The notes beneath the pieces are model-generated. The model was not told where the DNA came from and searched no databases. It saw only the letters and a list, made by a program, of their open reading frames with translations. Made by a program: the position numbers and the translations under genes. A stretch of DNA of 64,000 nt. It comes from Bugula neritina. Taxonomy: Eukaryota > Animalia > Bryozoa. Every line of letters starts with the position of its first letter. Within the stretch, counting starts at the first letter, position 1. Positions 3,001 through 64,000 of this stretch are shown here, one piece after another. Location of the stretch: contig OZ037765.1 in NCBI GenBank assembly GCA_964035545.1, positions 20,212,995 through 20,276,994 on the forward strand, given 5' to 3'.

Positions 3001-6000
3001 ATGTAATACAGAGCAGTCAAGCATTAAGGTATTACATTAGTTGTTGAGACATTTTCCACCAAAACCCTGGAGTCATGTTGTCACTAGTCAGGATATCAGA
3101 AGATGTTATTACTGTCTACAGCTCAAACTAAGCGTTCAATGCAACTGTTAAACTGTACATTCATCACGACGCCTGTCAAATTATGGCTGCCCTTTATACC
3201 AGAGCAGCCAACGCTCCGCTGTAAGTAAATTTCTTTGGTTGCCGTCTGAGAGCTGATTGGCTGAGTTGTTCCAAATGTTTGACCTACTGCCATGTGACAT
3301 TAGCACTTGATTTATTAAATTCATTCAATGTGAATAGCATTTTATATATTATGTTTGTAAATTTGGGTAAACTAAGTTGTTATTGCAGACATGGCTGGGA
3401 GGGGAGATTTATTCTGCATTCTCATTGGTGAGGAAATGAGATTCTTGCTTGCAACTAGTTAGTATAACTACGCATTAAAATCTTGCAGTATGGGGAGGCA
3501 AGTGACCATAACATAACACAAGCACAGTTCAAAAATTGCAAAGAAGTCTTATTCTGAGCTGTAGAAGGGCCGATACATGGTTCAAAGTGGTGGAGTAGGC
3601 TGCATTATGCTCTCATGTATTTCATATACCTGGAAGTATAATAAAATCTACCGCATACAGAATATAATATAATCAGATTGGGAACAAGCTGAATACATCC
3701 ATGGGCCACCATAATGAACCAAGGGCTGATGGGTACAATAATGTCTACTATATGTTGATGAGGAACAAATTGTGCACCGAGTATAACACATCAATTACAG
3801 TGTAGCAGTTTATGAGCTATAAACATACTCTCTGTCTCTTGGTTGATGGTGCAGTCATATCATCATCAGCCTCAAACTCCGCTCTCGATCTTTTAGTTTT
3901 GTTAGCCTCAGCTTCACTGCTCTGTCCAGCATCCGGTACGGAACCAACACCACTCGTCCCAGCAGCATCAATACCTGTGACAAAGGATCAATATCTGTGA
4001 TATAGGATCAATATGCAATATTATAAACAAGTGCAATAGCTATCATTGTATAGTGTTTAGTACATGTCGTATGACTTGAAATAGAGCAAGAGAACTACAG
4101 ATATAAAACCAAGTAGATTTTTTACCTTTCAACGTGTATAAATTTTTTCATATTCTTTTTTAGTGTTGTTGTTATATTCTTAGAGTTATATCATACTTTT
4201 AGTTTTTTTTTACTGTGTTCCCTCCATATCTGATGATTCCACATCTCACGGAATTCCGTAGGCCATGAGAATGGCTTAAACCATTGTTTTGTGGCTTATG
4301 CATGTGTGTATAGGAACAAAATGGCCGAATTTAACAGATCAGTGAGTTAATTCTGGTATTCTACTGTCAATAATTGAGGTTTTTGAATCCGCAGCTTAAT
4401 GAAATATGGAGAGAGCACTGTATCATATTTTTAGTTTCTTTTATATTATATTTCAAGTGTTTTCGTATTTAATTACAAATAAAGCAAGTAGGGTTTATAC
4501 TTACTTGTGCTGCTCGAGGCAACTAATCCAACGACAGAGTTGCTGCCGAACATACTTGTATTGTCAGCAGGAACATGAGACGTTATGATAGTGGCGGGGG
4601 CAGCCTGAGGAGCTACGTTGAGGGAAACAACGGGAGAGGCAGTCTGCTGGGGCACCGTAGAATGCAATGAGAATATAACGGAGCTGCTAGAGGAAGAGGC
4701 AGCCCCAGACGGCAGCGTAACAGAAGTACCAGACGTGGAAGTGCTAGAGGGCAGACTAGACAGCTGCTGGACAGGGGGCACTTCGGCTGACGCGCTGTTA
4801 GATGACGCAACGTTGGTATTAGGAGAGGCGGCCACTGAAGTAGGAGAGACAATTCCAACAACTACCTCTGCAAAAACATTAATATTTGTGTAATTAATAT
4901 CAAAAGTAATAAATATTCTAATTGTTATAAAAAAGCAGAAAGAAGAAATAATCAAGTTGTATGCCATTCATACTGTGATAATTACTAGTTAGTTTGATAT
5001 GATGAGCTCTAAAATCTATTTTAAAGGTTCTCAAGAAATACCTTCGACATTAGCTTCCTGTGACTCAGCTTGACTAGTTGTGGGCATGACTGTAGCCGTG
5101 GGTTGCTTAGGCTGCTGTTGAGCCATGGGCCGTACCTCTATAGTCCGCACTTGGGAGCGCTTAGAATCCGTGCTAATAAGACATGCACCAATTGTTATAA
5201 ATACCATAGAGGAAGATAGTATATCGAAAATGTTATTAACCTTTCAATCGACAAAGTTAATTCAAGTTTAAAAATGATTGTGGGCTCAAAACTACGATAG
5301 GCTTCTGGGTAAAAGTTTCATGCAGTTTTTCAGTTATTTTTGTGATCAAAAAAGCTAAAAAAGTGAAATAAATTTTAATTTTTTTTTTTGTAAAGCATTA
5401 GGGATTTGTATCACTTATACCCTTATTATACTAGACGAACCACAAAGCGCAACTTATATCCCGACACTACAGCTGTATGTATAGGAGCCAGGTGACACCT
5501 ACCTAGCTGTAATATGACCAGACTGGTTGCTAGACTGAGAGCTTGCACTCTTTTCTTCTAAACTGAGCAGCTTAGCCCGAGATTCATCAAGGTTCTGCTG
5601 GGCTTCTTCTAACTGGCTCTCTACAATTAACAGCTTGATGATGAAAAAAACATAATATTTTAATCAATATACATATTTAAAAAACACTGACCATTGAAAA
5701 GCGTTATAAATCAAAGGTGCTAACATTTAAAGAAAATCTAACACAAATTTGCACCAAACAATATTGAATTTTGATATATTGACAAAATATTGTGACACTT
5801 TACCTAGTTCAGCTGCTTTATTTTTTAGTTGCTTATTTTCTTCACTTCTCTTTTCCATATCTTTCTTCTGGGCTGCTAATTTAGGCTTGAGACTCACATT
5901 AACAAAATCTTTCAGAGCAGTGTGCTTCGAATTCAACTCATCAAACTCAGCTTTCACCTTATTATACTTCTCAGTAAGTTCAGACAACTCCTACAGTAAT

Positions 6001-9000
6001 TACACAAAATTATTCTCAAAACACCAACCAGTACTCCACATGTATCAACATACATGTATAATAATATATACAAACTGCTAGAACAGACTTTTTAGTGACA
6101 AAAATTAACAATCTAAAGTATATAAAAATCCTATTTCCAATATTAAACAAATAAGTTCCAAAAACTAAATCCAAGCAAAAATACTAAGCAACACACGTTT
6201 TTCAGGCTTGCTAGATCATCCTTTGCCTTTTGTGAAGCTTCATTCTCAGAAGTTAGACGAGTGATCTCCGCCTCCTTAGAAGTTAGAGTCTCTTTGAGAG
6301 TAGACAACTCCGTCTGTAATTTGTTTACTGCCTCATTTGATGCTGTAAACAAAGTCAAGGTCATAGCTTTTGCAGAACACTAGTAGTATAACTGTGTGAA
6401 AACAGTTTCAGCTGAAAGAGTAAAACGCCTAAATGATTACTAAATATTAGAACCTATGATTGCCTCCAAATACTTTTATACAGCTGAATATTATTATTAT
6501 ATATAGCAACTTCAAAAACAATTGGCAACCATCAGATTTTACATACAGAAGGGCAGGAAAACTGCATGTATACGCTGTTCTAAAAATATATTAAAGCAAA
6601 GTTACAAAGTAGCAAAAAAGTTTGTCCAGATTGCATTACCAACATCACCGCTGATTTTGTATAAAATAAACACATTGTGTTTTTCTAAAAAATGTCGACC
6701 AGTATTAGTTGATTTGCTAAATTTGGTGAAATTGCTAGGCATTGAAAATCAAATGTTGCGTATTCAGCAATTTTTAGCAATAATTATGGGTTGTTTAGTG
6801 ACATGCAAAGTAACAACTTATTTACAGTGATTAAAACCTAAATTAGACATGAGCATGTAAGACAAGATATATAAATATGTATACAGTATATACCCTGAGA
6901 TGTAGACGGAGCACCAGAAGTACTATCTTCTCCAGAGGCACCTCCAGCACTAGCAGCACCAGTACCAGTACCGGAGCCTTGAGCTTCAAGCAGCTTATTA
7001 TACTTCAGCCTATAGTTTCGACCCAATTTTTTCAGCTAAAAACAATCACGAATTTACTTACAATAATTTTAAATAAAGAACATATATCAACACCAGCATT
7101 CAGCTAGGAGGTAGTGTTAGACTACCTCATTTATCAGGCCCTCCTTCTTACTGATATCTTCTTTATTACTTTCTAGAGTAGTCTCAAGAGTGGCCACCTT
7201 CTTCTCCAACTCGGCTACATTCTCTGCCAATTTAGCCTTTTCTGCCCTTAAATTATAAATTAAAGTAGCTCATGTATAGTGTGCATAAGGTGTATGCAAA
7301 TTAAACAATGAGTATTAGAAATTATCTGCTCTCCATGGTTAAAGCCTGAAATATTTTTTTCAAGTGCAAAATAGTGATTGAATGACAACAATTATTCAAC
7401 ACAATGAAATGTTAATAATCATCGTATGCTTGATTGGAATGAAATTTAATTTGCAAAACAACGACACCAGGCCCAATACATAGATTAAGGTCATCTCAAT
7501 CTAAACTCCTCACAAAATCATCAATCAAGTGAAGGCACTTCTCATTAAATAATGTCCAAAAGCTTTCTTTCACTTGCATCATGACTTACATACCCAGAGG
7601 CTTTGAAGGGATCAAAGATACTTACTCTGTAGCTGTGACTGTAGATTTGACTTTGTTCAATTCAGCAGTTAATTTTTGAACTTGTTGATTCAAATTAACT
7701 GTCGACTTTTTCTGCAGCTCCATGTCAGCCCTACAGTTATATTCTAGATCTGCATTCATTATTCCATGAGAAGCTTGTGTATACTATTTTTATTTGATAT
7801 ATGACTTTTAGCCTTATCAAACTAGGAAAACCTGGACAAGACTAATGCAATCTTAAGTATCTTTACACATCTCTAATTCCCTCGACCTCTGCACAAATAC
7901 TCACAGATGCTTCTTATTTTCCTCCATCTTCTCCTGGTCAAACTTCTGCACAAGACTATCGGACCTCTGCTTCCAGTGATCCGCAACATTCTGCAGAGCT
8001 ACTTTCTCCGCCTCCAGAGTCTGAAGAGACATGTTCAGCTCCGTAATCTTACCCTCCAGTGGTACTATGTCAGCTGATAGCTGTGACACCTGCATATATT
8101 TCATAGTCGTATGTATTGGATGGCAAGTCTTATAAAACAACCACACCGAGAGTTTATTATATGCATAGTTTCATGAAAAAATTTCGCATACTATTTTATT
8201 TGATACGTGATTTTTAGTGTTGTAAAACTAGGAGAAACTGGGCAATACTAATGCAATCTCAAGTAGTTTTACACATCCCAAATACCCTATCAACTTGTAC
8301 AAACTCAGTCTAGAGATAGGGCTGTGTTGTCTCTTAATAGATTAAAACATATCTCAAGTGTATGAGCTACCAGGCATTGTGCTCTGCAGAAACTAGATTC
8401 AGACTATTGAAACTCTTAGAGTTAGGCCAACAGATATACCTAGCTGAAAAGCATGGAGCATATGCTACTCTGCACACATAACATTGGCTACCATGTACCG
8501 CCACGAGTTTCACTACAGCAGCATACAGATAGCAAGTCATGACAAAGCCAACCTGCAGCTGCAACTGGTTTATTTCCGGCTGCATGCTATCCTTTTCCTG
8601 TCTGAGCATCCTGTTGCTGTCGGTCAGCACATTGATCTGTTCAACTTTACGCAGCAGCTCCGCATGCTGAGCCTTCGTCTGCACATCAATGCTAGCCTGA
8701 GATCTTTCACCGGCCAGCTCGTCACGGGCTCGCTTCAGCTCACTCTCAACAAAAGTTATCTTAGACTCCAATCGCTTACATTCGGCTGTACTGCTTTCCA
8801 ACCTGGAATCAAATAGAAACTCTGTGACCAAAAGCAAAAGAAAACACACCAACTATTTTATACCAATGCAACCGAGATCACTATCAAAAGCTGCAGAATA
8901 ACCGACTGTAAATCTCTAATCTGATTATGCTTTTTAATTGCTATAACACAAAGTGTCTTACTTAGTTTCATACAACTCTTTGTCTTTACGCAAGACTTTG

Positions 9001-32900: not shown

Positions 32901-35900
32901 TGCTATAGGTGTATAACTAAATATTTATTATATAAGTATGCTGCACTATAAAGCACTAACTGCAGTGCATAGTTGATATACATTACAATCTATAACATAT
33001 TTCAGCCTGGTGTGTTATGAACCATGAAACTCTTTAAATTTTCAAAGTAATCTTAAATTTGACAACAAAATGGAGCAGTCCAGGATGTTTGTTTGTTTGT
33101 TTGTTTGTTTGTTTGTTTGTTTGTTTGTTTGTTTGGTTTATTTCATCAAAGGTATTTAATAACACAAGGACATTAGAAAATGCCAAGGAGGCGATGATGA
33201 GGCCCATTGCGCTATAGCCTAGCTAGTCATGCGCGGGCCAACACGAGCTGACAGCGACTCTATCCAGAAAAATACAAAAAAAATACAACTATTCTAACAG
33301 ATAAAGCCTCAACTTCCTCCCAAATTCATTAGGGTTGCTAATTGACCGTAAAGGGATTGGCAGTTCATTCCATAGTGCCACCTCCTGATAACAGTTTCTC
33401 CTGTGACCTGCTGCTGTTTGAGAGTGAGGAAGGGGGAGATTTATGAATGATTGACGTGTATTGATAGAGTGAGTGGGAAAAAAATTGTCAGAGTAGAAAA
33501 AAGAATGAGCTTTCTTTAACACTTTAAAACGGTAAATCTGGTATATTGAGAGAACTTTATGCTTAGTAAATAGAGGCGCTGATGGATGGTCAAACGGTTT
33601 TTTGTTCATGATACGCATTACCTTTTTTTGAAAAATAAAAATCTTGTTTAGATGGGTATTAGCTGCATTTCCCCAGGCCTCTGCACAATAATTTAACTTG
33701 GAATTGATGAAAGAATTATATATCAAAAGTAAAATTTTTTGAGGGAGATATTCAGAACATCGGTATATTAATCCACTAAGTGGTCGTAATTTTGTAAGTA
33801 GGTTTGAGATGTGCAAGCTCCAATTTAAATTTTTATCTATTTGTACACCTAGAAAAGTTATGCTGTTAGAGTAATTTATAGGTCTTTTATTTAATAATAT
33901 ACAGTTTTCTAGAATTTGAAAAGGATTTTGGTAGTTTTTTAAAACAATATAGTTGCATTTTTCATAGTTTATAGTGAGTTTGTTTTTATTGCACCAAATT
34001 GACAGAGAGTTTAGATCTTGATTTATAGCTTCCAAATGGGAGTTCAAATCTTTTGATTCAAAAAATAAATTAGTGTCGTCGGCATAGAAAATGGGATTAA
34101 AAAGTTTAAATTGTTGAGCAAGATCGTTTATATATATCAAAAATAAGGTAGGGCCCAAGACAGATCCCTGGGGAACCCCACAGGTCACTGATCGTGAACT
34201 TGATAAGGTTGCATTTACTAGTGTGGAATGACTTCGGTTTGATAGGTAGTTAGCAACCCATGACACTGTGGATTCACTAAAACCAAGTTTTCTCATTTTT
34301 GCAAGTAAAATATTGTGATTTATAGTGTCAAAAGCCTTACTAAAATCTATAAAAATTCCGAGAACGCAATTTCCATTGTTAAAAGCTTCGAGCGTATTAT
34401 TTTTAAATTTAACAACAGCATCTGCAGTACTTAAATTTTTTCGAAAGCCATATTGATTCTTAGAAATCAAATTTTTAGATTCTAAAAAGTTTAAAATTTG
34501 ATTGTTAACAATTTTTTCAAGTATTTTACTAAAAATGGGGAGGATTGAAATAGGGCGGTAGTTTTCACATCTGTCATGAGAACCTTTTTTGTAGAATGGT
34601 AATATTTTAGCAGTTTTAATTTGCGCTGGAACAATTTTTTCTTCTATGCTTTTGTTAAATAAATAGGCAAGTGGTGTAGATAGTGAAATTTTGCAAAATT
34701 TGATAAGTTTAGTCGGGATATTGTCTAAACCTATAGCTTTCTTGGAATCTAGTTTTTCAATGATCTCAATTATTTGAGATTCATCAGTTTTTTTTAAATG
34801 AAATTCTTCTTTAGTAATATTTGTCAGCATTGAGTAGGTATCGGAGTTCGAATTTGTAAAATTTGAAGCTAGTTTTTGGGCTATTGTTGAAAAATACAGA
34901 TTGAAATTGTTAGCTATATCCATATTGCTATCTAGCATGGTTTCAGAGTCCTCAACCGAATACAGTTTTGATGAAAAGCATCTTTTGTTTAGTTTGGCTT
35001 TCCCTGTTTGTTCATTTATAAGTACCCAAAGCTGCGAACTGTTACAATTGCTAATAAAAGCTTTAAAATAATCATATTTAGCGGTTCTCAGATCAGCATT
35101 CAAATTATTTCTAAAAGCATTATATCTTTTTAAAATCTTTTTATTCAGGGGTGCTTTTTTCACTCGTTTGTGAAGTGCATATTTCTTTTTGATTTGAGTT
35201 AAAAGATGTTCAGTAATCCATGGTTTTTGTGCAAACTTTTTAGAAGGCCTATTGTTTTCAATAGTCTGTGAACAACTTTCAATGAGAAATTTTAGTCTAG
35301 TAATAAATATATCATAGTTTACTTCACAATTTTGTGAGTCATCAAAGAGCTTCAACCAGCAAAATGAGTTTATCTTGGAAACTAGTTTGGAATAATTAAT
35401 AGTTCTATACATATCATCTGAGACAATATTAGTTCTATTTGAACAATTCAGTTGAAACGTCACAAAAGTGGGTAGGTGGTCACTCAAATCTGACTCAATG
35501 GTTCCAGATTTACCGTTTATGCAAGAGAAGTTTAGAAGGATATGATCTAAACAGCTAGCTCGTGACGATGAGATTCTAGTTGGGAGAGTGATAGCATTGT
35601 AAAAGGCATAGGTAGAAATAGTGGTGGAATAAGTGTCACTTACATTCATGTCAAGGGTATCTATATTGATGTCACCTACTACAATATGGGGAGAAGAATC
35701 ATGGGAAATATAAGCCTCCAGGTCACTAAGAAACGCATCAGTGGAGGAAGCACCGGGCTGCCTGTATATAATTGTGAGTCTGAAATGGGAAGACTTTGAG
35801 GCCTGACTGTGTAGAACAAGTGAGAGGACGTCTGCTCCAGACAGCGAAACAGCCTTCGTGTCGGCCCCCAGGCCACACCGCACATAGGCCCCAACACCAC

Positions 35901-38900
35901 CTCCTCTACCCAGTCTCTGACTACCTACAAAATCATAACCTTCAAGTTTAAAAAATTGAATTTCATCATCATTTAGCCAAGTTTCAGTTAAACAAATTAC
36001 ATCAAAGGGGTTAGAAAAAGTGTTCAAAAAATATTCAAAATGTGAAAATTTATTTCTAATGCTTTGAATATTAAAGTTAAGAAGAGAGAAAGTTGAATTA
36101 TTTACTTCTAGTTTGTTAAAAGAAAAGATGTCGTATGCTGTGCAGTTAATTTCATGCATTTTGCAAAAGATAACTTAGCAGTTTAAGTTAAATACAAAAG
36201 TGAGGTACACTAAACACATTTCAGGTTCTCGAGATCATTTACATCATTTATTTGGATAGCCTCCGAGTCAGGTGTTCTGCGCAAGTAAATTCGTTGGGCA
36301 AATGTCCAAACATACTTATAGTTGTTTGATTTTTTGAAGTTTCTGGTTTTCCAAAAAAGGTCCCTTTGCTTACTACTGAGAATTATTATCTTAATAATCA
36401 TATGTACTCAGACCTATAGTAGAGAGAGAGATGCTTTCTAACTGTTAAATGAAGCTATTTTCTAGTTACTGTGTAGTAAGGGATGATTGCTACATTTCAC
36501 GAGATACCAAAAAGCCCTCAAGACAAGTGTTTAGCACACATGGCCATGCTACTCAATAAGCACAGTTTCTAACATATGTCTCATGTATATGTATTCCAAT
36601 ACAACCTGAGCACTAACTACTCTGAACACTAACTGGTGTGACTTACAAGTAAATGCAATGATTGAAAGCATAGCACAGGTACTGACTGCATACCTGCTCC
36701 TGGAAGGTAGACAACTCCTGCTCCAACTCTTCACACTTGATAGACAGCTGTTTGTTTTGCTCTAGTAAAGTTTGGCCAATGCGAGCAGCTAATTCCAGAT
36801 CTTTCTCTTTCTAATCAATACATAAATTATAGTACAAAGTAATGGCAAAGCAAACATGGCCCTCGCAGCCTCAATGTCAGGGAGAGCCTGCTCCTGTGTA
36901 GTTATAATATGCCGAGAAGATGTCACTAAAGGCAAGGCAAGAGGTGATTTCAATGCTTTAACTGACCATGTTTAGGCAGAAAAATTACATATTTAACTTA
37001 TTAATACCATCACAATTACTCATACTGCTGTGAAATCAATCAAATTGAGGGTAAGCTAACTATAAACTTACCATCAACAAATAATAAAACAATGCAATAC
37101 TCTTCCCATTACATTACATCCAAACTCAACTAATCATTAATATAGAAAAGCCCAATACAAAAGAGTTGAAAACTTCAACAATAAATAGACAGACCTCTTC
37201 TAAGAGATGAGTCACAGCCTCGATATCATCATAGACTTTCGTCATTTGACTAACTCGTTCTCCACAAATCACTGCAGAATATATTAAATTATTATGACAT
37301 GATGTGACCAGCCAGAGCAGCTAACTGAACAAAGCAGTGAACAAGCTGAACGTGAAACAATAGTAGTACTAGTAGTAAAAGGAACTAAATGAAACAATTG
37401 GTTAACCCATGGCTGTGTTCATATATAAAATTAGATGAGGGTTTTACACTTTTACCTCAACACCAATCTAGCAGTTATATGCTATATATCAGTGACCTTA
37501 GCCAAATGTTGACACTGGAACTCTATTGACAATTCTATTATAATAAAGTTATCAATAGCTAATAAAACAACAAAAAGCTGTTTAATAGCAGTGTTATAAC
37601 AGTAGCTGTGCAATCAACTCCTTTACTCAGTTAAGGAGAACAAACAATGATTGCATGTTAGCTCAGTGTTATTGTTCATCTAAGTTCAACAGCAAAGATA
37701 TATAAACAAGTTAGAAAATAATTCTAAAAGCAAACCAGCTGCCGCTGATTATTAACAAGTGAATGTATATTATTATATAGTCACACAGCAATACTGTACC
37801 ATTTTTGAACAGGGCTGCTGCACTAGCTGCTGCATCCATCTACATCTAAGTAACACCAAAGCATGCAATCAATCAAACTGAATACAGCCAACAGCTATTA
37901 AAGTGTGTGAATGAGCAATAGTTGGGAAAACTGGCATCCTCAGTGAATAGTTAAATGCCACAGCGGGCCAAGTTCATAAAGTGCAGCGTTCAGGAAAATA
38001 AAGGTGATGTTTTACTACATGTATACAAACTAACTAGCTAAATAATACTGCATATGAACCACATCTTAGTTTCAACTTACAGAAATATTTAAAAACTTCC
38101 GAAATTTGTTCTAAAGATAGCTGTAGATCTTGAGCTTGTATAAGGGGAGGTTGTGGGACACCCCAGTCTTGAGTGTGATAGGATGAGAAGTCTGTGATAG
38201 TATTTGCTCTCAGCTTGTAACTTGGTAATGACTCAGTAAGTATAGACACCAGCTCTATTTCCGGCAGTTGATCGCTAGTGCACACGTCTGCAAATAGCAC
38301 TAATCCTACTAATCTTACAGACTATGGACTAGGAGTATATGCTGCATTAGCTTTCTGGGTTATCAAATAGCAAAACCATTAGCAACCTGCAAACTCCAAA
38401 GTAAAACCACAACACTGCTGCAATTAACTAATAAAATTACCCAATAGCTCATAGCAAAAGATGCTAAAAGCTGGAAAAAACATTAAAATCAATTATGGCA
38501 GCAAAAAATTATGGACCTAAAGAAATTGCTTTGTAAACTTCTAGCTTTAAAAGGAATTTGTAATTGACAGATATATTTTTTAAAGGTGATGTTTGTATAC
38601 AATAAAAAACTCGCTAAACCCAATATGTACAGAAACTTTTATCACAGAAGGTTCAATATTTCAGAAGTATGCCTCTGATTTTTTTTTTGTTTCTTTATAA
38701 ATATAGAGATTAAACCCAAACTTTGAGTGAATTGGAGGTTTTCTTGTACTATTTTTCAAAGAGACCACGATAAGTTACCAGGTTTTATAGGTGTAAACTA
38801 TAATCCAACTAGAGTTTTATAAGTACACATGATTGAATAAAAGGGTAAAAGCTAACCTGTCAACGTGCTAGCATCTTGCACTTCTACCATTAAGCAGCAT

Positions 38901-57800: not shown

Positions 57801-60519
57801 TAGGAGAATAGGTTCATCAAACTGCAGCTTGTGTTTATTATATCAACACTTGCAAATAAAATTTGTTTAGAGGCTGACTATTTTATTTTATAACTGAAAA
57901 GGTTGTTAAATAGAGATTTTAATAGCTTTGTCTAGTAAACTTTCTAGCACTGTGTACATCTAAACTGCAATATTTTATGCTCATGGTGCCTGATTAATTT
58001 ACCTTTAGAAGTCATTGCCAGCCACCCCAAGAGCTGGAAGAAAAGGTGTCGCGCAGTCAACAGGTCATGTGAATTCTCCGGAGACTTTTGTGATTGGCAG
58101 AGAAAAACAGAGATTGCGTGCTCAGTCGTCTCCACAAACACCGGATGCTCAGTTTTATGATGACCTCCCGCCTACACCAACAGCACCCACTCTCATGTTC
58201 GTCTCTCCAATGACTGGAGAGAAAAGTAGGCGAGGCACTAAACTGGCCAAGGATAGCCCACAGCTCACTGGCATCTCCGGGATGTTCCGTGAGACTAAAG
58301 GAAGGAAGAGTGCGGTACTCACTGGCGTGAAGGAGCTGATGATGCAACCAAAGGAAAGAAAAAGCATGGCACTGGTTGGGGTCAAGGAACTCTTGCATAC
58401 AAAGAGGTACTAAAGCAAATGTGAAACTAGAATAAACATCATTTTCAGAAATAAATGCCATTTTGTTGTACTTCTAAGTTAAATGTCTAGAAATGTTGAC
58501 TTGAGGTAAAATTTTATGACAAATAGCATTGCTAAAAACATTGAAATGTTGATTTCTAACAAATGCTACTTATTAATTTATGCCCTTGGGCCACCTTCAG
58601 AGTATAAAATTTAATACATTGTCCCCATGTTGTAATGTGCATATATTTTATATTCCGGAGACTGTTCAAAGATTTAGGTTAAAATTTAGCAATTAAGGAT
58701 CTCTTAGTAACTGTATTTGGGATATCTTCTGTTGTAAAATCATTACAATGTGGGTCGCAACTTTCTTGAGTTGTTGTATAGACCTCGAAAAAGTGCATCC
58801 TTAGTGGGAGTGAAGGAGTTGATGCAAATACCCAAAGCCAGAAAGAGTGCATCCTTGACAGGGGTAAAAGAGTTGATGGCTGCCCCAAGGTAACATCTTT
58901 GAAAGTTCGGGTGCACATGGTTTATACAGGTCACCGAAATATTTGGTACTATTCACCTAAAAATATGGTACATTTGACTGAAGATGGTGATGAAGTGCTT
59001 CACCAACACCACTAATATCATCTTTGCATGTATTCTAAGTTTTATCTTCAGTAGTTGCCAGTTGCTGCTAAAAGTTACTAAGGATGTACTTGTGTGTTGC
59101 AGAAGTCGAAAGAGCAGTGAGCTGAAGGGAGTGAGAGAGTTGATGAAATCACCAGTAGATCTGCCAAGTCCCAGACTAGCAGGAGTGAGGGAGCTCATGA
59201 CAACTCCTAAAGAAGCACCTAGTCCTGTGTTGATTGGTGTAAGGAGAATGGGATATACTCCCAAAGAACGTGGCACTCCGAAATACACTGGCATCAAGGA
59301 TATATATAGAGTTGAAAAATCTCTGCCATCTCCTGATATGGAAGGTACATTAAATATTTACACATGTAGCATTTTATGTATATCAAAGTATTGGGTGCTT
59401 GGAATGTTTCATGTGATTATGGAAACTGTTACCTGATTCAGTAGTATAGTGCGTTATTGCTCTCATAAAACTGTTGGCTACTAACTGGTCCTTGAGCTTC
59501 ATCTTGTTTTCAGTGTTAATTATCTTTGTTATTTCGGAAAATTGTGCCAAGACAATGTAATTTATGAATTTCTGCCCAAACTATTTATTAATTTTTTTTT
59601 AGGACTAATAGATTTCATGGCATCTCCCCAATCTGTTGGACCTGCGAATCCTAAACCAACTAAACGAAAGGCAGCATCTAAACCAGTTGATGTTCCTCCA
59701 GCTAAAACTGTGAAGCAGGTTTCTCAAAAGACTGTGTCACCAGTAAAAAGAGCAACCCGTAAAGCTTCAGCTAATCTTGTCACCCACCCTGCCGCAGATG
59801 GGTCTTCAGAAACGGTGCCTGCAAGATCAACTCGAAGAACTGGTCGAGTGGCATCAGATAGTCGGAGTACTACTTCCGATGAGAAAACCTCTGCTGCTGC
59901 TAAGAAAGCTACTCGAAGTCGCAAAGCCCCCGTAAAAGAGGTGGAAGCAGCCATTTCTGCAGTGGCCCCTGATGTCCCGGTATCTCCTATAAAGCAAGTA
60001 ACCAAACCCAAAACTCCTCCAAAGGTGATTGATTCTCCAGTTCAAAGGGCAACTCGACGAGGTAAACGTGCTCGAATTGAAGAACCAATCAACAGTGAGA
60101 TCACTTCCTCTCCGGTACCACAGAGTCCAGCAAAACGAGCCACTCGAGGCCGTAAGGCCACAACTAAAACAGTCAGTGTCAAAGCTGTTTCTCCTCACCA
60201 GTCCACTCCTACAGCAAGAAGGGCAACACGTAGAGGCAAGGTTAGTAAAGAAGACTGCGAAGCATTATCACCCAAAGCCAAGGGTAACAAAAAGTCCAGC
60301 AAATCTTCAGTCAGTACAACTGAGGTTGCAAGCAAAACCAGAACCAAGCGTGGTGCAAAGGCTCCTGTATCATCACCACAAGACTCCGAGAAAATCTCAA
60401 GTGAAGAAGCAACATCAACCTTTCCAGTTTTACTAGCTAAAACCAGAGCTAGTCGCAGAAAAGCTCCTGCTGTTGAGAAGTCTCCTCCAGTCACCAGAAG
60501 AACTAGATCCAGAAAGTAA
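51814..60519 (+). CDS. MKI67: Proliferation marker Ki-67 orthologue, multi-exon
   Basis: FHA domain GKVVVIRRGGEDGSIFPMTMQQCLIGR/SNTCSIRVQLPAVSEQQCEI (exons 51814-51932, 52472-52704). PP1 site KRKRVSFGAMLSPELFDKSLPAGTPIRKG (exon 54883-55035). KKTWADIVK at ~57607. CD motif TGHVNSPETFVIGR at ~58060. LxGVKELM repeats 58250-59630. Arg-rich C-terminus; TAA at 60517-60519. Confidence 0.9.
56716..57005 (+). repeat. Coding 27-bp tandem repeat (SRKATPTSA, ~11 units) inside MKI67
   Basis: Unit AGTAGGAAGGCCACACCCACATCTGCT; shorter units lose a whole codon, so the frame is kept. Confidence 0.93.
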
Positions 60520-62346
60520 ATTCAGATTTTATGCTATACAGTTAATTTTTGTTGACAAATATGCCATTTTATCTAGCACTTCATGTAACTCATCTGAGTG
60601 ATCATTGGTAACCACACTGTGTACTATATTAGTAATTGGTTGTGGTATAAAATGTATGAAGGGATTTTATGTATTACTTTCTGGATACAATATCATTATT
60701 TTAGCGAAACCTATAATTGAGTTTTTCTCATTTTTTTGAAATTATTGTAAAATATTTTTTTATGCTACTCTGTCTAATCAAAATTATGCCCCTATAAAGT
60801 TTTACTGTTCAACCCAATTTAATGTGGTTATGGTTATTGATATTATGATTTTGCATGTTGTAGTATTGTTCTATCATCATACTTTACAAAATATCTAAAT
60901 GATATGAATAAATGTGCTTAAAATACAGGAAAATTTCTCTTAATTTTTATCCTTGCAATTCCATACTTTCATGTCCAAAAAATAGTATTGCTCCTCACCA
61001 CATTTAATTGTATATGATAGACTTACTTCCTTATTTGTTCAATACCTGGTTCGTGGCAAATGAAACTTACCTTCGACAGTACAAACACAAATACTGAATC
61101 CAAGCATAGTCCATATTATAGTGCAAAAATTTTACATAGCTATATTAGTTGGTCAAGACTTGGTAAAACAAAAAATTTCTGTAACATTAGAATTGGTGCA
61201 TGATCTATAGTTATATATATACATGTGTGTAACAAAAATACCTCTGGCACGATAGGTGTGTGTGTGTGTGTGAACATTGGTGCAAACCAGTAAGCCAAAT
61301 TTAGTTGAACCATAGTTTCCATAATATATGCTCCAAGTCATTAGTTATATAAACTGCCACGAACAAGCTTAAACTTTTCATTTCGTGTCATTTATTTCAA
61401 CAGCCGGCAGTTTACTCGACTAGTAAACTAAATTTTAGTCTAGTAGAGGCATGCACCAACTCCAGAGCTGCAGCATTGCTCAATTGAAAGAAACCGCAAA
61501 GTAACGTAGTCAGCCTAGCGACATCATTGATCCAGCATGTTACTTGCAGACAATTTTCTCAACAAATGTCGACACACGAGGTGACTAACTCCCAAATTTA
61601 CGGAAAAACACCAATACTTGGCCATCGCAATTAATGTTGCGACAACCCGCTATGAGCCAGTGCACACTTTCCATGGGCCAAGTTTGCACTCGTGTCTTCA
61701 AATAAAAATTGCTGCTACTTGAGTGAGAACAAATCAGTATTGCATCAATTAATCTATAGACAAGTTGTATAGCTACATACTGAGGGTATATTCAGATGCC
61801 ATGTGTATTGTACACAATCAATATGTAATTATTATTTTAACTACAAACTGATATTGAATAATTAGGAATTTCTAATTCTTTTATTAGTAAATACAAAAAA
61901 ATACAAATGAGCTGAGACATTGTTGCACTAAAGACATTACAACAATAAAGCCATGGAAAGCAAAATAAAATATAGGTTTTAAGACAATAGCTCGGTGTTG
62001 TTATACCAAGTCCTTGTTTTCTTCTACAGAGAAACTACAAAGAATAAATATAATGGTATATTTCTTTAAAAAATTTGAAGTTATTACATATTTATGTAAG
62101 TTCTACTTATACAACAAGATCTGAACAAGACACATGTGGCATGGTGTTAATGCTCAAATACACAAAACAACACATTAAGGAAGTGAAATGGTATTAAACA
62201 ACTGCTAACCTTGCACTTGCTGATAAGAACGCGTGCAATATTTTGATGTATATAAAACTACAGTAACATCGAGACTCTACAAAAGAATTCAACAATTGAA
62301 AAATAATGAGCAAGTGACATTTTGTGAAACAAATAATATACTTGGG

Positions 62347-62412
62347 GGCAAATCAGAAACAAGGAATTGCATATCTACAGTATTTTCAGAGAAAATTATC
62401 ATCGGGTATACC
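62347..62412 (-). ncRNA. Degenerate copy of the snR57-like C/D snoRNA (possible pseudogene)
   Basis: The C box is altered (CCGATGATA in place of RTGATGA). D' CTGA and D CTGA are present. The guide AATTCCTTGTTT has C>T at the +5 position. Confidence 0.65.
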
Positions 62413-62570
62413 ATAAATAAATATATACCACAAGTCAAACAAATGATAGTTTACCTCAATGCAGACAGGTTTTTTGGATTCAAGAGGAAACCTTGTATAA
62501 TCTATAAACATACACACAAGGTTAGCAAATAAACATTGTGCCCCATAGTGTAGACCAGACTATGGTGAGT

Positions 62571-62640
62571 TTACTTCAGATTACCAAGTATCAACACTGT
62601 GTCACTGACAGGGATAACAATATTCATCATTGAAATGTAA
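62571..62640 (-). ncRNA. Box C/D snoRNA, snR38/SNORD1-like (LSU rRNA site equivalent to yeast 25S Gm2815), copy A
   Basis: ATGATGA, guide GTTATCCCTGT (antisense to LSU ACAGGGAUAAC), D' CAGT, C' GTGTTGA, D CTGA, terminal TTAC/GTAA stem. Lies ~69 nt upstream of the 3' splice site. Confidence 0.85.
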
Positions 62641-63164
62641 GTAGTGGAACTGTTCACACAAATTGCAAGTTTTCAAGCCACAAACTATTATATCAAGGGT
62701 CACAGAAATGGGTTAAGCTATGGAAGCCATCCAATGGTAAAGAACATAACTACAACATACTGTTTGGTTGGCATTATGCACATGCAGGTGAACTTTACTA
62801 GCCTCAACTTATGGTGGTGTTATAAAAACACTAGACGATTATCTCAGATCTCAACAAACTTTAAGTCACCATTAAATTTTTTTTGCAGACTTTGGTTAAA
62901 TTGTCTCCGACATTGCATTTGAAGGGCACCGCCTATTGTGGCGCATAATTTCAACTGCTAAGTAAATTTTTTGATAAACTAAGCCTTAGGCAGACGAGAT
63001 TTATAACTCAAGGTCAACTTACTTGACTCATTTCTTGACTCCAATGGTTTCAACACAACTTCAAGAGATCACAGGATACTCGCAAACCTGAAACAAAACT
63101 TGGTGTCCATTACCGTCATATAAAATAGCAGCAGCAGCAGCTCACCAGCTATATCTTTAGACTA

Positions 63165-63227
63165 GTGCATGTCAGAAACGAGGAATTTATCCACAAAGGT
63201 GTTCAGAGAAGTAATCATCATGTGCAC
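63165..63227 (-). ncRNA. Box C/D snoRNA, snR57-like (18S site equivalent to yeast Gm1572)
   Basis: GTGCA/TGCAC terminal stem, ATGATGA, D' CTGA, guide AATTCCTCGTTT then D CTGA. The guide is antisense to 18S AACGAGGAAUU. Lies ~77 nt from the 3' splice site. Confidence 0.88.
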
Positions 63228-63384
63228 AATAATATGAATAGTGAGTAAAGCAGCAATCAGTTACCTTAATTTGCATCAATTATCATCTTGAGGGATCAGA
63301 TTCATGGCTAACCTGAAAATAAAGGACACTTGGTTATTAGCCACATAACATTGCACATGTCGGCTACCTAGAGTGCAGTTATTT

Positions 63385-63449
63385 CGCTTCAGTATACCAA
63401 ACATCAACACTGTGTGTCTGACAGGGATAACAAAATTCATCATAGTAGC
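63385..63449 (-). ncRNA. Box C/D snoRNA, snR38/SNORD1-like, copy B
   Basis: ATGATGA, guide GTTATCCCTGT, D' CAGA, C' GTGTTGA, D CTGA, GCT/AGC stem. Lies ~72 nt from the 3' splice site. Confidence 0.88.
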
Positions 63450-63700
63450 AGATGGAAAACAACTAAAAATAGGTAAATTGATTGCAACAGCAGTAAAAGG
63501 TTTGCAGCATCAACTTTACATAAATGAGGTAAACTATACTACAAAAACGAACTAAAGTATTTGCAATTTACCTGGTGATCAATAAGTGACTCCCTTCCCA
63601 AATCATCAACATAGAAGTGTGGTCTAAAATAAAGAAATGAGCTGATAAGTTTTTATGTAACTGAATGAAAAGTTGGATCACTGGAGCAAGACTTTACTTC

Positions 63701-63766
63701 GGTGCTATCAGAAACGAGGAATTGTATCCACATGGATCTTCAGGGGAATTAATCATCATTCGCACC
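63701..63766 (-). ncRNA. Box C/D snoRNA, snR57-like
   Basis: GGTGC/GCACC terminal stem, ATGATGA, D' CTGA, guide AATTCCTCGTTT, D CTGA. Lies ~77 nt from the 3' splice site. Confidence 0.88.
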
Positions 63767-63977
63767 ATAAATAAAAGGTTTGCAGCATCAACTTTACATA
63801 AAGTGAGGTAAACTATGCTACAAAAACAAAATAAATTATTTGCAATTTACCTGGTGACCAATAAGCCACTTCCTTCCCACCCAAATCGTCAACATAGAGC
63901 TGTGGTCTAAAATAAAGAAATGAGCTGATTAATGTAACTGAATGAAAAGTTGGATCACTGGAGCAAGACTTCACTGC

Positions 63978-64000
63978 GGTGCAATCAGAAACGAGGAATT
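63978..64000 (-). ncRNA. Box C/D snoRNA, snR57-like, 3' part only (truncated by the window end)
   Basis: AATTCCTCGTTT-CTGA-TTGCACC; paralogous to 63701-63766. Confidence 0.75.

Follow-up and report, generated by a model that had tools for sequence, protein, structure and literature searches.

Small nucleolar RNAs (snoRNAs) of the box C/D type are RNAs of 60-90 nucleotides (nt) that are bound by fibrillarin, Nop56, Nop58 and Snu13. In Drosophila, Uhg-type non-coding host genes with many snoRNA-bearing introns, often with several isoforms of one guide, were reportedly described by Tycowski and Steitz in 2001. The mammalian counterparts include UHG/SNHG1, GAS5, U17HG/SNHG3 and SNHG16, the last of which hosts SNORD1A/B/C (snR38A-C), the guides for 28S Gm4362 (PMC7154078, PMC8881200, PMC3511168). 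The residence of snoRNAs within introns of genes for ribosomal proteins is another, classical layout that provides for co-expression with ribosomal components (PMC3511168). When examining an AT-rich, 64,000-nt stretch of the genome of the bryozoan Bugula neritina (assembly GCA_964035545.1, contig OZ037765.1, positions 20,212,995 to 20,276,994; hereinafter the window), we found at its far end, on the minus strand, an array of short exons and snoRNA-bearing introns that we consider, with a probability of roughly 80%, to represent the 3' half of a gene transcribed by RNA polymerase II that has many exons, codes for no protein and is of use through its introns.

By its predicted anatomy, this gene is a non-coding snoRNA host of the UHG/GAS5/SNHG type, that is, of a gene type already known from mammals and flies. 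With UHG/SNHG1, GAS5, U17HG/SNHG3 and, above all, SNHG16, it has in common the multi-exon structure, the lack of a usable open reading frame (ORF), the presence of a single C/D snoRNA per intron at the canonical spacing, and the repeated copies of the guides; moreover, one of its two snoRNA families is predicted to guide the same conserved 28S site as the snR38A-C RNAs of SNHG16. Unlike the mammalian hosts, the bryozoan gene carries ten snoRNAs from only two families, has expanded by recent tandem duplication, abuts the ribosomal protein gene RPLP0, and has a 5'-terminal oligopyrimidine (TOP) start that is a candidate. Because its exons show no similarity to those of the mammalian hosts, there are no grounds for calling these genes orthologous. 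The Drosophila Uhg genes are likewise invertebrate non-coding hosts with snoRNA introns, although the phylum and the guides are different.

All features of the host gene lie on the minus strand of the window and, because the gene continues past the window end, the sequence was extended with a 10-kb stretch (L006; window coordinate = L006 coordinate + 61506). The extended locus comprises 12-13 exons and ten snoRNAs and spans ~3.5 kb from the candidate start to the poly(A) signal, the exons E1 to E12 being 28, 49, 52, 51, 52, 56, 52, 48, 65, 47, 67 and ~256 nt long. The part within the window consists of E6 (63851-63906, 56 nt), E7 (63572-63623, 52 nt, a paralogue of E3, E5 and E6), E8 (63265-63312, 48 nt), E9 (63023-63087, 65 nt), E10 (62455-62501, 47 nt), E11 (62210-62276, 67 nt) and the terminal exon E12 (61865-62120), which is preceded by the acceptor ...cttgttcag and contains, at 61885-61880, the only sense-strand AATAAA in the host region, a finding consistent with a polyadenylated exon RNA that would be spliced and short-lived through nonsense-mediated decay. 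An initial annotation of the window had counted seven or more exons of 47-70 nt with good splice sites; the splice sites hold up, all introns being of the GT...AG form with a pyrimidine tract ahead of the AG, whereas the exon count is to be amended to six short exons (47-67 nt) and one of 256 nt. The same annotation correctly recognized that E6 and E7 are paralogous exons that differ by a 4-nt indel. Ten of the 11 or 12 introns, 173-521 nt in length, harbor one sense-strand C/D snoRNA each; those without are the last intron, I11 (62121-62209, 89 nt, GTTAGC...TTCAG), in which our covariance models of the two families find no match, and the candidate first intron (201 nt).

In every one of the ten copies, 74-84 nt separate the end of the D box from the 3' splice site, which agrees with the 69-90 nt originally estimated for the six units in the window. 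C/D snoRNAs whose processing depends on splicing are located ~50 nt upstream of the branch point (PMC8162545), and both PMC8162545 and PMC13736004 cite Hirose and Steitz 2001 on this subject. With one unit per intron and spacing of this kind, the locus has the layout of splicing-dependent snoRNAs that had been proposed for it. The copies multiplied through tandem duplication of exon-intron modules. The intron I9 (62502-63022, minus strand) is 521 nt long, two to three times the length of the other introns, with its snoRNA located near the 3' end; its 5' part, which contains a stretch, AATGGTG...CTTAAAG, that recalls E2, may contain a decayed exon-intron module, a suggestion to which no model or family match lends support. 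Comparison of I9 and of the candidate first intron with curated RNA families yielded no match.

The ten snoRNAs fall into two families, namely, family A with six members (the near-identical A1-A4, the older A5 and the degenerate A6) and family B with four. The six units that the initial annotation placed in the window, one per intron, are all recovered here, as A3, A4, B3, A5, B4 and A6. The first of these, in intron I5, extends past the window end (3' part at 63980-64000; whole snoRNA at 63980-64042; 99.6 bits with the family A model at L006 2470-2540). The layout of family A, an AUGAUGA C box, an internal CUGA (D'), the guide AAUUCCUCGUU(U), a CUGA D box and a 5-bp terminal stem, is seen in full in A4 (63703-63765, intron I6, 63624-63850; D guide AAUUCCUCGUU, stem GGUGC/GCACC, 100.7 bits, 84 nt from D box to 3' splice site), and the same stem is present in all of A1-A4. 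The older, diverged A5 (63164-63228, intron I8, 63088-63264; 77.2 bits, D box 84 nt before the splice site) has the terminal stem GUGCA/UGCAC and an unchanged D guide. The degenerate A6 (~62343-62416, intron I10, 62277-62454; 65.5 bits, D box 76 nt before the splice site) contains the C box CGAUGA and the guide AAUUCCUUGUUU, which includes one G.U pair with 18S ribosomal RNA (rRNA). Family B, of the snoR38/snR38/SNORD1 type, is represented in the window by B3 (63382-63453, intron I7, 63313-63571; 40.2 bits with the Rfam snoR38 model, E 2e-4, and 103.4 bits with our family B model; D box 76 nt before the splice site) and B4 (62569-62637, intron I9; 33.1 and 100.4 bits, respectively; D box 74 nt before the splice site). 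The terminal stem in this family is 3-4 bp long and, between B3 and B1, two double changes preserve the pairing. The C and D boxes are present in all ten snoRNAs, and the boxes, the guides and the spacing from D box to splice site are intact in nine of the ten.

The guides were compared with the animal's own ribosomal DNA (L009), and the target nucleotides were derived by the fifth-nucleotide rule. The D guide of family A forms 11 Watson-Crick pairs with the segment CAACGAGGAAUU of the 18S rRNA and selects G1613; a G follows this position at +3, and at +67 comes the decoding-site C within ACACCG[C]CCGUC. These offsets equal those from Gm1572 to m7G1575 and Cm1639 in yeast 18S rRNA (PMC5199042), so G1613 corresponds to the Gm1572 site, which in yeast is made by snR57 (PMC5199042; also PMC4344503). 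A target in common is what the alignment of the sites indicates for family A and snR57, common descent of the two RNAs not being implied. To our knowledge, the equivalent of the yeast Gm1572 site is absent from the human 2'-O-methylation list. In family B, it is the D' guide, GUUAUCCCUG, that forms 10 pairs with the animal's own 28S rRNA, at CAGGGAUAAC in the peptidyl-transferase region, so that the middle G, nt 3190, is selected. The A-loop U and G, within GGAU[UG]UUCACC, follow at +106/+107, and this offset equals that from yeast Gm2815 to Um2921/Gm2922, which makes G3190 the counterpart of Gm2815, the product of snR38 in yeast (PMC5199042). The equivalent sites are Gm2815 (snR38) in yeast, Gm4362 (snR38A-C, SNORD1A-C) in human and Gm2805 (AtsnoR38Y) in Arabidopsis, with all these guides belonging to the Rfam family RF00213 (PMC3511168, PMC8817022, PMC8881200). 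In both families, the second guide region is short and varies between species, so each RNA seems to carry a single working guide.

From these observations, the following course of events can be envisaged. The gene would be transcribed from ~80 nt behind the RPLP0 poly(A) signal and spliced, and the debranched introns would be trimmed back to RNAs protected within small nucleolar ribonucleoproteins. Copies of family A would then direct 2'-O-methylation of 18S G1613 and those of family B that of 28S G3190, the modification itself being predicted from the pairing, whereas the spliced exons, devoid of a usable reading frame, would probably be discarded.

To assess how the two guides are distributed in the genome, covariance models R1 (family A) and R2 (family B) were built, the assembly of 216 Mb was searched, and the best 150 candidates were scored. 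Among these, only the 6 + 4 copies of the host locus were recovered. Matches to a guide-plus-box pattern elsewhere in the genome occurred at the control level, and the three that were inspected (L010-L012) turned out to be coding exons or to lack a snoRNA-sized distance from C to D box. This strongly indicates, although it does not prove, that the genome has no detectable source of the two guides besides the host gene. Within the array, the snoRNAs are better preserved than their surroundings. In recent duplicates, the snoRNA parts are 95-100% identical compared to 83-96% for the rest of the module (for example, 100% versus 89% for A1 and A4, and 98% versus 83% for A1 and A3), and in the older B pairs, the snoRNAs are 84-91% identical compared to 71-84% for the flanks. 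This bryozoan host appears to be the only detectable genomic source of two guides, one for a site that is conserved in yeast, human and plants and the other for a site known from yeast, and it presents a clear case of dosage increase via tandem duplication of exon-intron modules.

Stops were counted exon by exon, with frame bookkeeping across the exons. E8 and E9 are closed in all three frames, as had been noticed at the outset for two of the exons, and so is E12 (5, 7 and 3 stops in the respective frames); no frame passes through more than three to four consecutive exons. The paralogous exons differ in length by numbers that break the frame, namely, by 2 nt between E2 (49) and E4 (51) and by 4 nt between E6 and E7. 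Comparison with Pfam of the longest unspliced ORFs (99 and 92 codons, both on the other strand) and of the two open frames of E11 gave no meaningful match, most of the exons being below the 20-residue minimum of the search.

The contigs of relatives, which we identified in metagenome and Logan assemblies using the last RPLP0 exon as the query, show that linkage of the two guides to RPLP0 persisted as their housing changed. The arrangement in the closest relative (85% identical; L014-L019) is that of Bugula: B, B and A snoRNAs, housed in introns of the GT-AG type, come after RPLP0 on its strand, and their D boxes are ~80-89 nt away from the acceptor. Two contigs of this relative with an identical last RPLP0 exon have the module orders B, B, A (L014) and B, B, A, B with an N gap (L016), and from this difference the array appears to be variable in copy number between individuals or close species. 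A more distant relative (76%; L024/L025) contains the B snoRNAs in RPLP0 introns 2 and 3 and the A snoRNA in intron 4 (positions 488-565, 1040-1114 and 1549-1613 of L024, a Logan SRR25569789 contig), 79, 73 and 86 nt from the respective 3' splice sites; both B copies pass the snoR38 gathering score, and neither family was found in the 800 nt downstream of RPLP0. In the third relative (78%; L023), RPLP0 introns 3 and 4 are empty, and one B copy is located 1.76 kb downstream of the gene. Five further RPLP0 contigs (L026, L027, L029, L030 and L031-33) contained neither A nor B. Between Bugula and its closest relative, B aligns with 76-80% identity over ~60 nt, and in A only the 17-nt guide with the D box aligns, at 100%, whereas the host exons and the remaining intron sequence do not align at all. 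Conservation of the snoRNAs in combination with unalignable exons and introns is the expected signature of a non-coding host. Together with the lack of a frame that is open throughout and the frame-breaking indels, it supports the initial proposal of a dedicated non-coding host with two guide families in several copies.

Several points weigh against the interpretation of the locus as a non-coding host gene. Transcription, splicing, the processing route, methylation and the mode of start are features that we infer from genomic sequence. The Rfam family RF00213 (snoR38, yeast snR38, human SNORD1A-C) is the best-scoring one for every B copy, at 31.4-40.2 bits, which is below its gathering score of 45 bits; the orthologous B copies at the RPLP0 locus of the relatives, with 45.7-49.3 bits, are above it. 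Family A is without a curated match in Rfam, and the best sub-threshold families, SNORD100 and snoR60 (18-25 bits), have other guides; a scan of the whole window at the Rfam gathering thresholds detected nothing in the host region. The apparent uniqueness of the guides extends to the 150 best-scoring candidates. The 5' end of the gene is a candidate only, and the pyrimidine-rich motif that defines it could equally well be a downstream element of the RPLP0 poly(A) site. Finally, a micropeptide may be produced from the exons.

If the last of these points were taken further, the exons could be thought to encode a small protein in a coding host that was missed by ORF calling, and frame bookkeeping does permit ORFs of up to ~70-90 codons across E1-E7. 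Given, however, that E8, E9 and E12 are closed in all frames, that paralogous exons differ by 2 and 4 nt, and that the exons cannot be aligned between species and match nothing in Pfam, we regard a protein-coding host as very improbable. The snoRNAs are closely spaced on one strand, as in the endonuclease-cut polycistronic clusters of plants or yeast, in which case the apparent exons and splice sites would be irrelevant; but each unit has a GT donor on one side and a pyrimidine tract with an AG on the other, and the D-box-to-AG distance of 74-84 nt holds for all ten copies, the old, diverged ones included, with 73-89 nt in the relatives, among them true RPLP0 introns. Such a cluster seems just as improbable as a coding host. 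Scarcely better are the prospects of a decaying array of dead duplicates, such as a pseudogenized partial copy of RPLP0 that is no longer expressed or needed. A6 is degenerate, E2 resembles the interior of RPLP0 exon 4, and the one long intron may hold a decayed module, all of which would fit decay; in a dead array, however, one would not expect the only detectable guides for two sites, one of which is conserved from yeast to human and plants, nor boxes, guides and spacing intact in nine of ten copies, nor snoRNAs conserved across species when everything else has diverged.

The RPLP0 gene next door, also on the minus strand, ends at L006 position 4032 (...MGFGLFD, stop) and has its AATAAA at 3972-3967. 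The candidate start of the host gene, the pyrimidine-rich CTTTCTGCTTT, lies at L006 3886, 81 nt behind this poly(A) signal, and is followed after 37 nt by a GTAAGT donor (3849); the first acceptor, that of E1, is at 3649. More copies and a TOP start had been anticipated beyond the window; the extension did bring the number of snoRNAs to ten, and for the start it provided only the candidate CTTTCTGCTTT. The 10-mer GTTCTTTCTG holds this candidate start, and an identical 10-mer holds RPLP0's own TOP-type start.

A second host of the same design is found in the same genome behind another ribosomal protein gene, RPL5 (L013, G000:C3:19956501-19966500, minus strand, from 6212 down to 300). Directly after the RPL5 stop at ~6212 and the AATAAA at 6152 comes a GTGAGT donor, and then an extended array of C/D snoRNA-like units of three families, which start ~320 nt behind the RPL5 poly(A) signal. 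In design and in position behind a ribosomal protein gene, the two hosts are alike, whereas the guide families and copy numbers differ. In view of this parallel, a connection to the upstream ribosomal protein gene deserves testing. A start motif common to RPL5 and its host was considered and rejected: the matching word falls within intron 1 of RPL5, and this gene's real start, CCTTTTCC, is further upstream. Ribosomal_L5e has a second full-length match in the assembly (235 bits), which lacks introns and is situated on a small contig (G000:C140:26025-26507, plus strand); it could represent a retrocopy or come from the DNA of a different organism.

The proximity of RPLP0 brings up the possibility that the exons described here are trailing non-coding exons of the RPLP0 unit, reached by read-through, with the snoRNAs and their function unchanged and the promoter different. 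They could represent 3' untranslated region (UTR) introns of an RPLP0 isoform prone to nonsense-mediated decay, which would use the GTAAGT donor, or else an operon-like downstream unit whose first acceptor, at L006 3649, takes a spliced leader. Counting from the RPLP0 AATAAA, the first strong donor is 118 nt and the first acceptor 319 nt downstream, and hardly any space would remain for a separate promoter. The pyrimidine-rich motif, 81 nt behind the AATAAA in Bugula, starts only ~21 nt after it in the relative, where the downstream element of a poly(A) site is expected, so the motif could be such an element and the array could be fed by RPLP0 read-through. Both snoRNA families are tied to RPLP0 in four lineages, in one of these inside the RPLP0 introns, and the second amplified host occupies the equivalent position behind RPL5. 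Conversely, the RPLP0 AATAAA is canonical and located 58 nt after the stop codon, with no good donor in the 3' UTR, the candidate host start repeats RPLP0's 10-mer GTTCTTTCTG as a second initiator would, and in the third relative, the B snoRNA is as far as 1.76 kb behind RPLP0. On balance, a TOP-like start of the host's own is weakly preferred, and read-through is a real but minority possibility.

The linkage to RPLP0 also suggests where the host might have come from. E2 can be aligned with an interior segment of exon 4 of RPLP0 in Bugula (L006 4662-4620), with 33 matches in 38 aligned positions and three gaps. The score is 32-34, whereas 3000 random genomic segments gave at most 26-28 and none of 3000 shuffles reached this level. 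After allowing for ~40 comparisons, this likeness is still suggestive and agrees with derivation of the host from a partial RPLP0 duplicate. E4, the paralogue of E2, aligns with the same segment of exon 4, below significance; among the host exons compared with RPLP0, only E2 was clearly similar, and a match of E1 was dismissed as a low-complexity GCT run. The similarity of E2 to exon 4 was obtained by gapped local alignment only and was not recovered by blastn with short words. In the closest relative, no similarity was detected between the host exons and the RPLP0 of that species. A search of the Bugula RPLP0 introns for relics of A or B with filters off gave nothing significant, the best match, in intron 4, having 8.4 bits and an E of 1.1. 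A tree built from the last RPLP0 exon (90 amino acids) did not resolve whether the intronic or the downstream state came first. Conceivably, the host was born from a partial tandem duplicate of RPLP0 with its snoRNA introns, lost its coding capacity and was amplified, the intronic snoRNAs of the working RPLP0 being lost; transcription of RPLP0 might still drive the array via read-through or leader trans-splicing. This scenario is, in our estimate, possible but rather doubtful: with no trace of RPLP0 in the relative's host exons and the direction of change undecided, a decayed RPLP0 duplicate is best treated as conjectural.

Compared with ribosomal protein genes that serve as hosts, Bugula and its relatives present both arrangements. 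The relative represented by L024 carries the two families within RPLP0 introns 2-4, 73-86 nt from the 3' splice sites, in the classical manner, whereas the RPLP0 introns of Bugula are empty and the guides reside in a separate non-coding array directly downstream. These two states form a natural pair for studying the change of snoRNA hosts and the origin of non-coding hosts. Should the origin from RPLP0 prove true, it would imply, along with the RPL5 parallel, a lineage-wide shift of snoRNAs from ribosomal protein introns to trailing non-coding exons, with both states surviving in relatives. In genome annotation, the region should be marked as a long non-coding RNA host with ten snoRNAs rather than left empty.

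The host gene is convergent with a Ki-67-like repeat gene on the plus strand, in accord with the initial annotation: the last long ORF of that gene ends at 60519, and the host AATAAA faces it at 61885-61880. Other ORFs in the window include a ribophorin-like one and one for a reverse transcriptase of the LINE type. A SNORD36 match at 35936-36011 (minus strand), the sole hit in the window at a gathering threshold (31 bits versus 30, E 0.59), lies inside a 956-amino-acid LINE-type endonuclease/reverse-transcriptase ORF (33289-36159, minus strand) and is probably due to chance. Beyond the window, ~0.5-1.4 kb upstream of RPLP0, ~1 kb of tracts resembling ACTAAT/AGTAAT with a 6-nt periodicity extends over L006 6400-7350, and still further upstream, at L006 7678-8854, mir-297, mir-1277 and mir-3149 have low-complexity matches far below threshold. 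In the stretch that separates the host's 3' end from the Ki-67-like gene, there is a short (GT)n microsatellite (window 61255-61275, plus strand).

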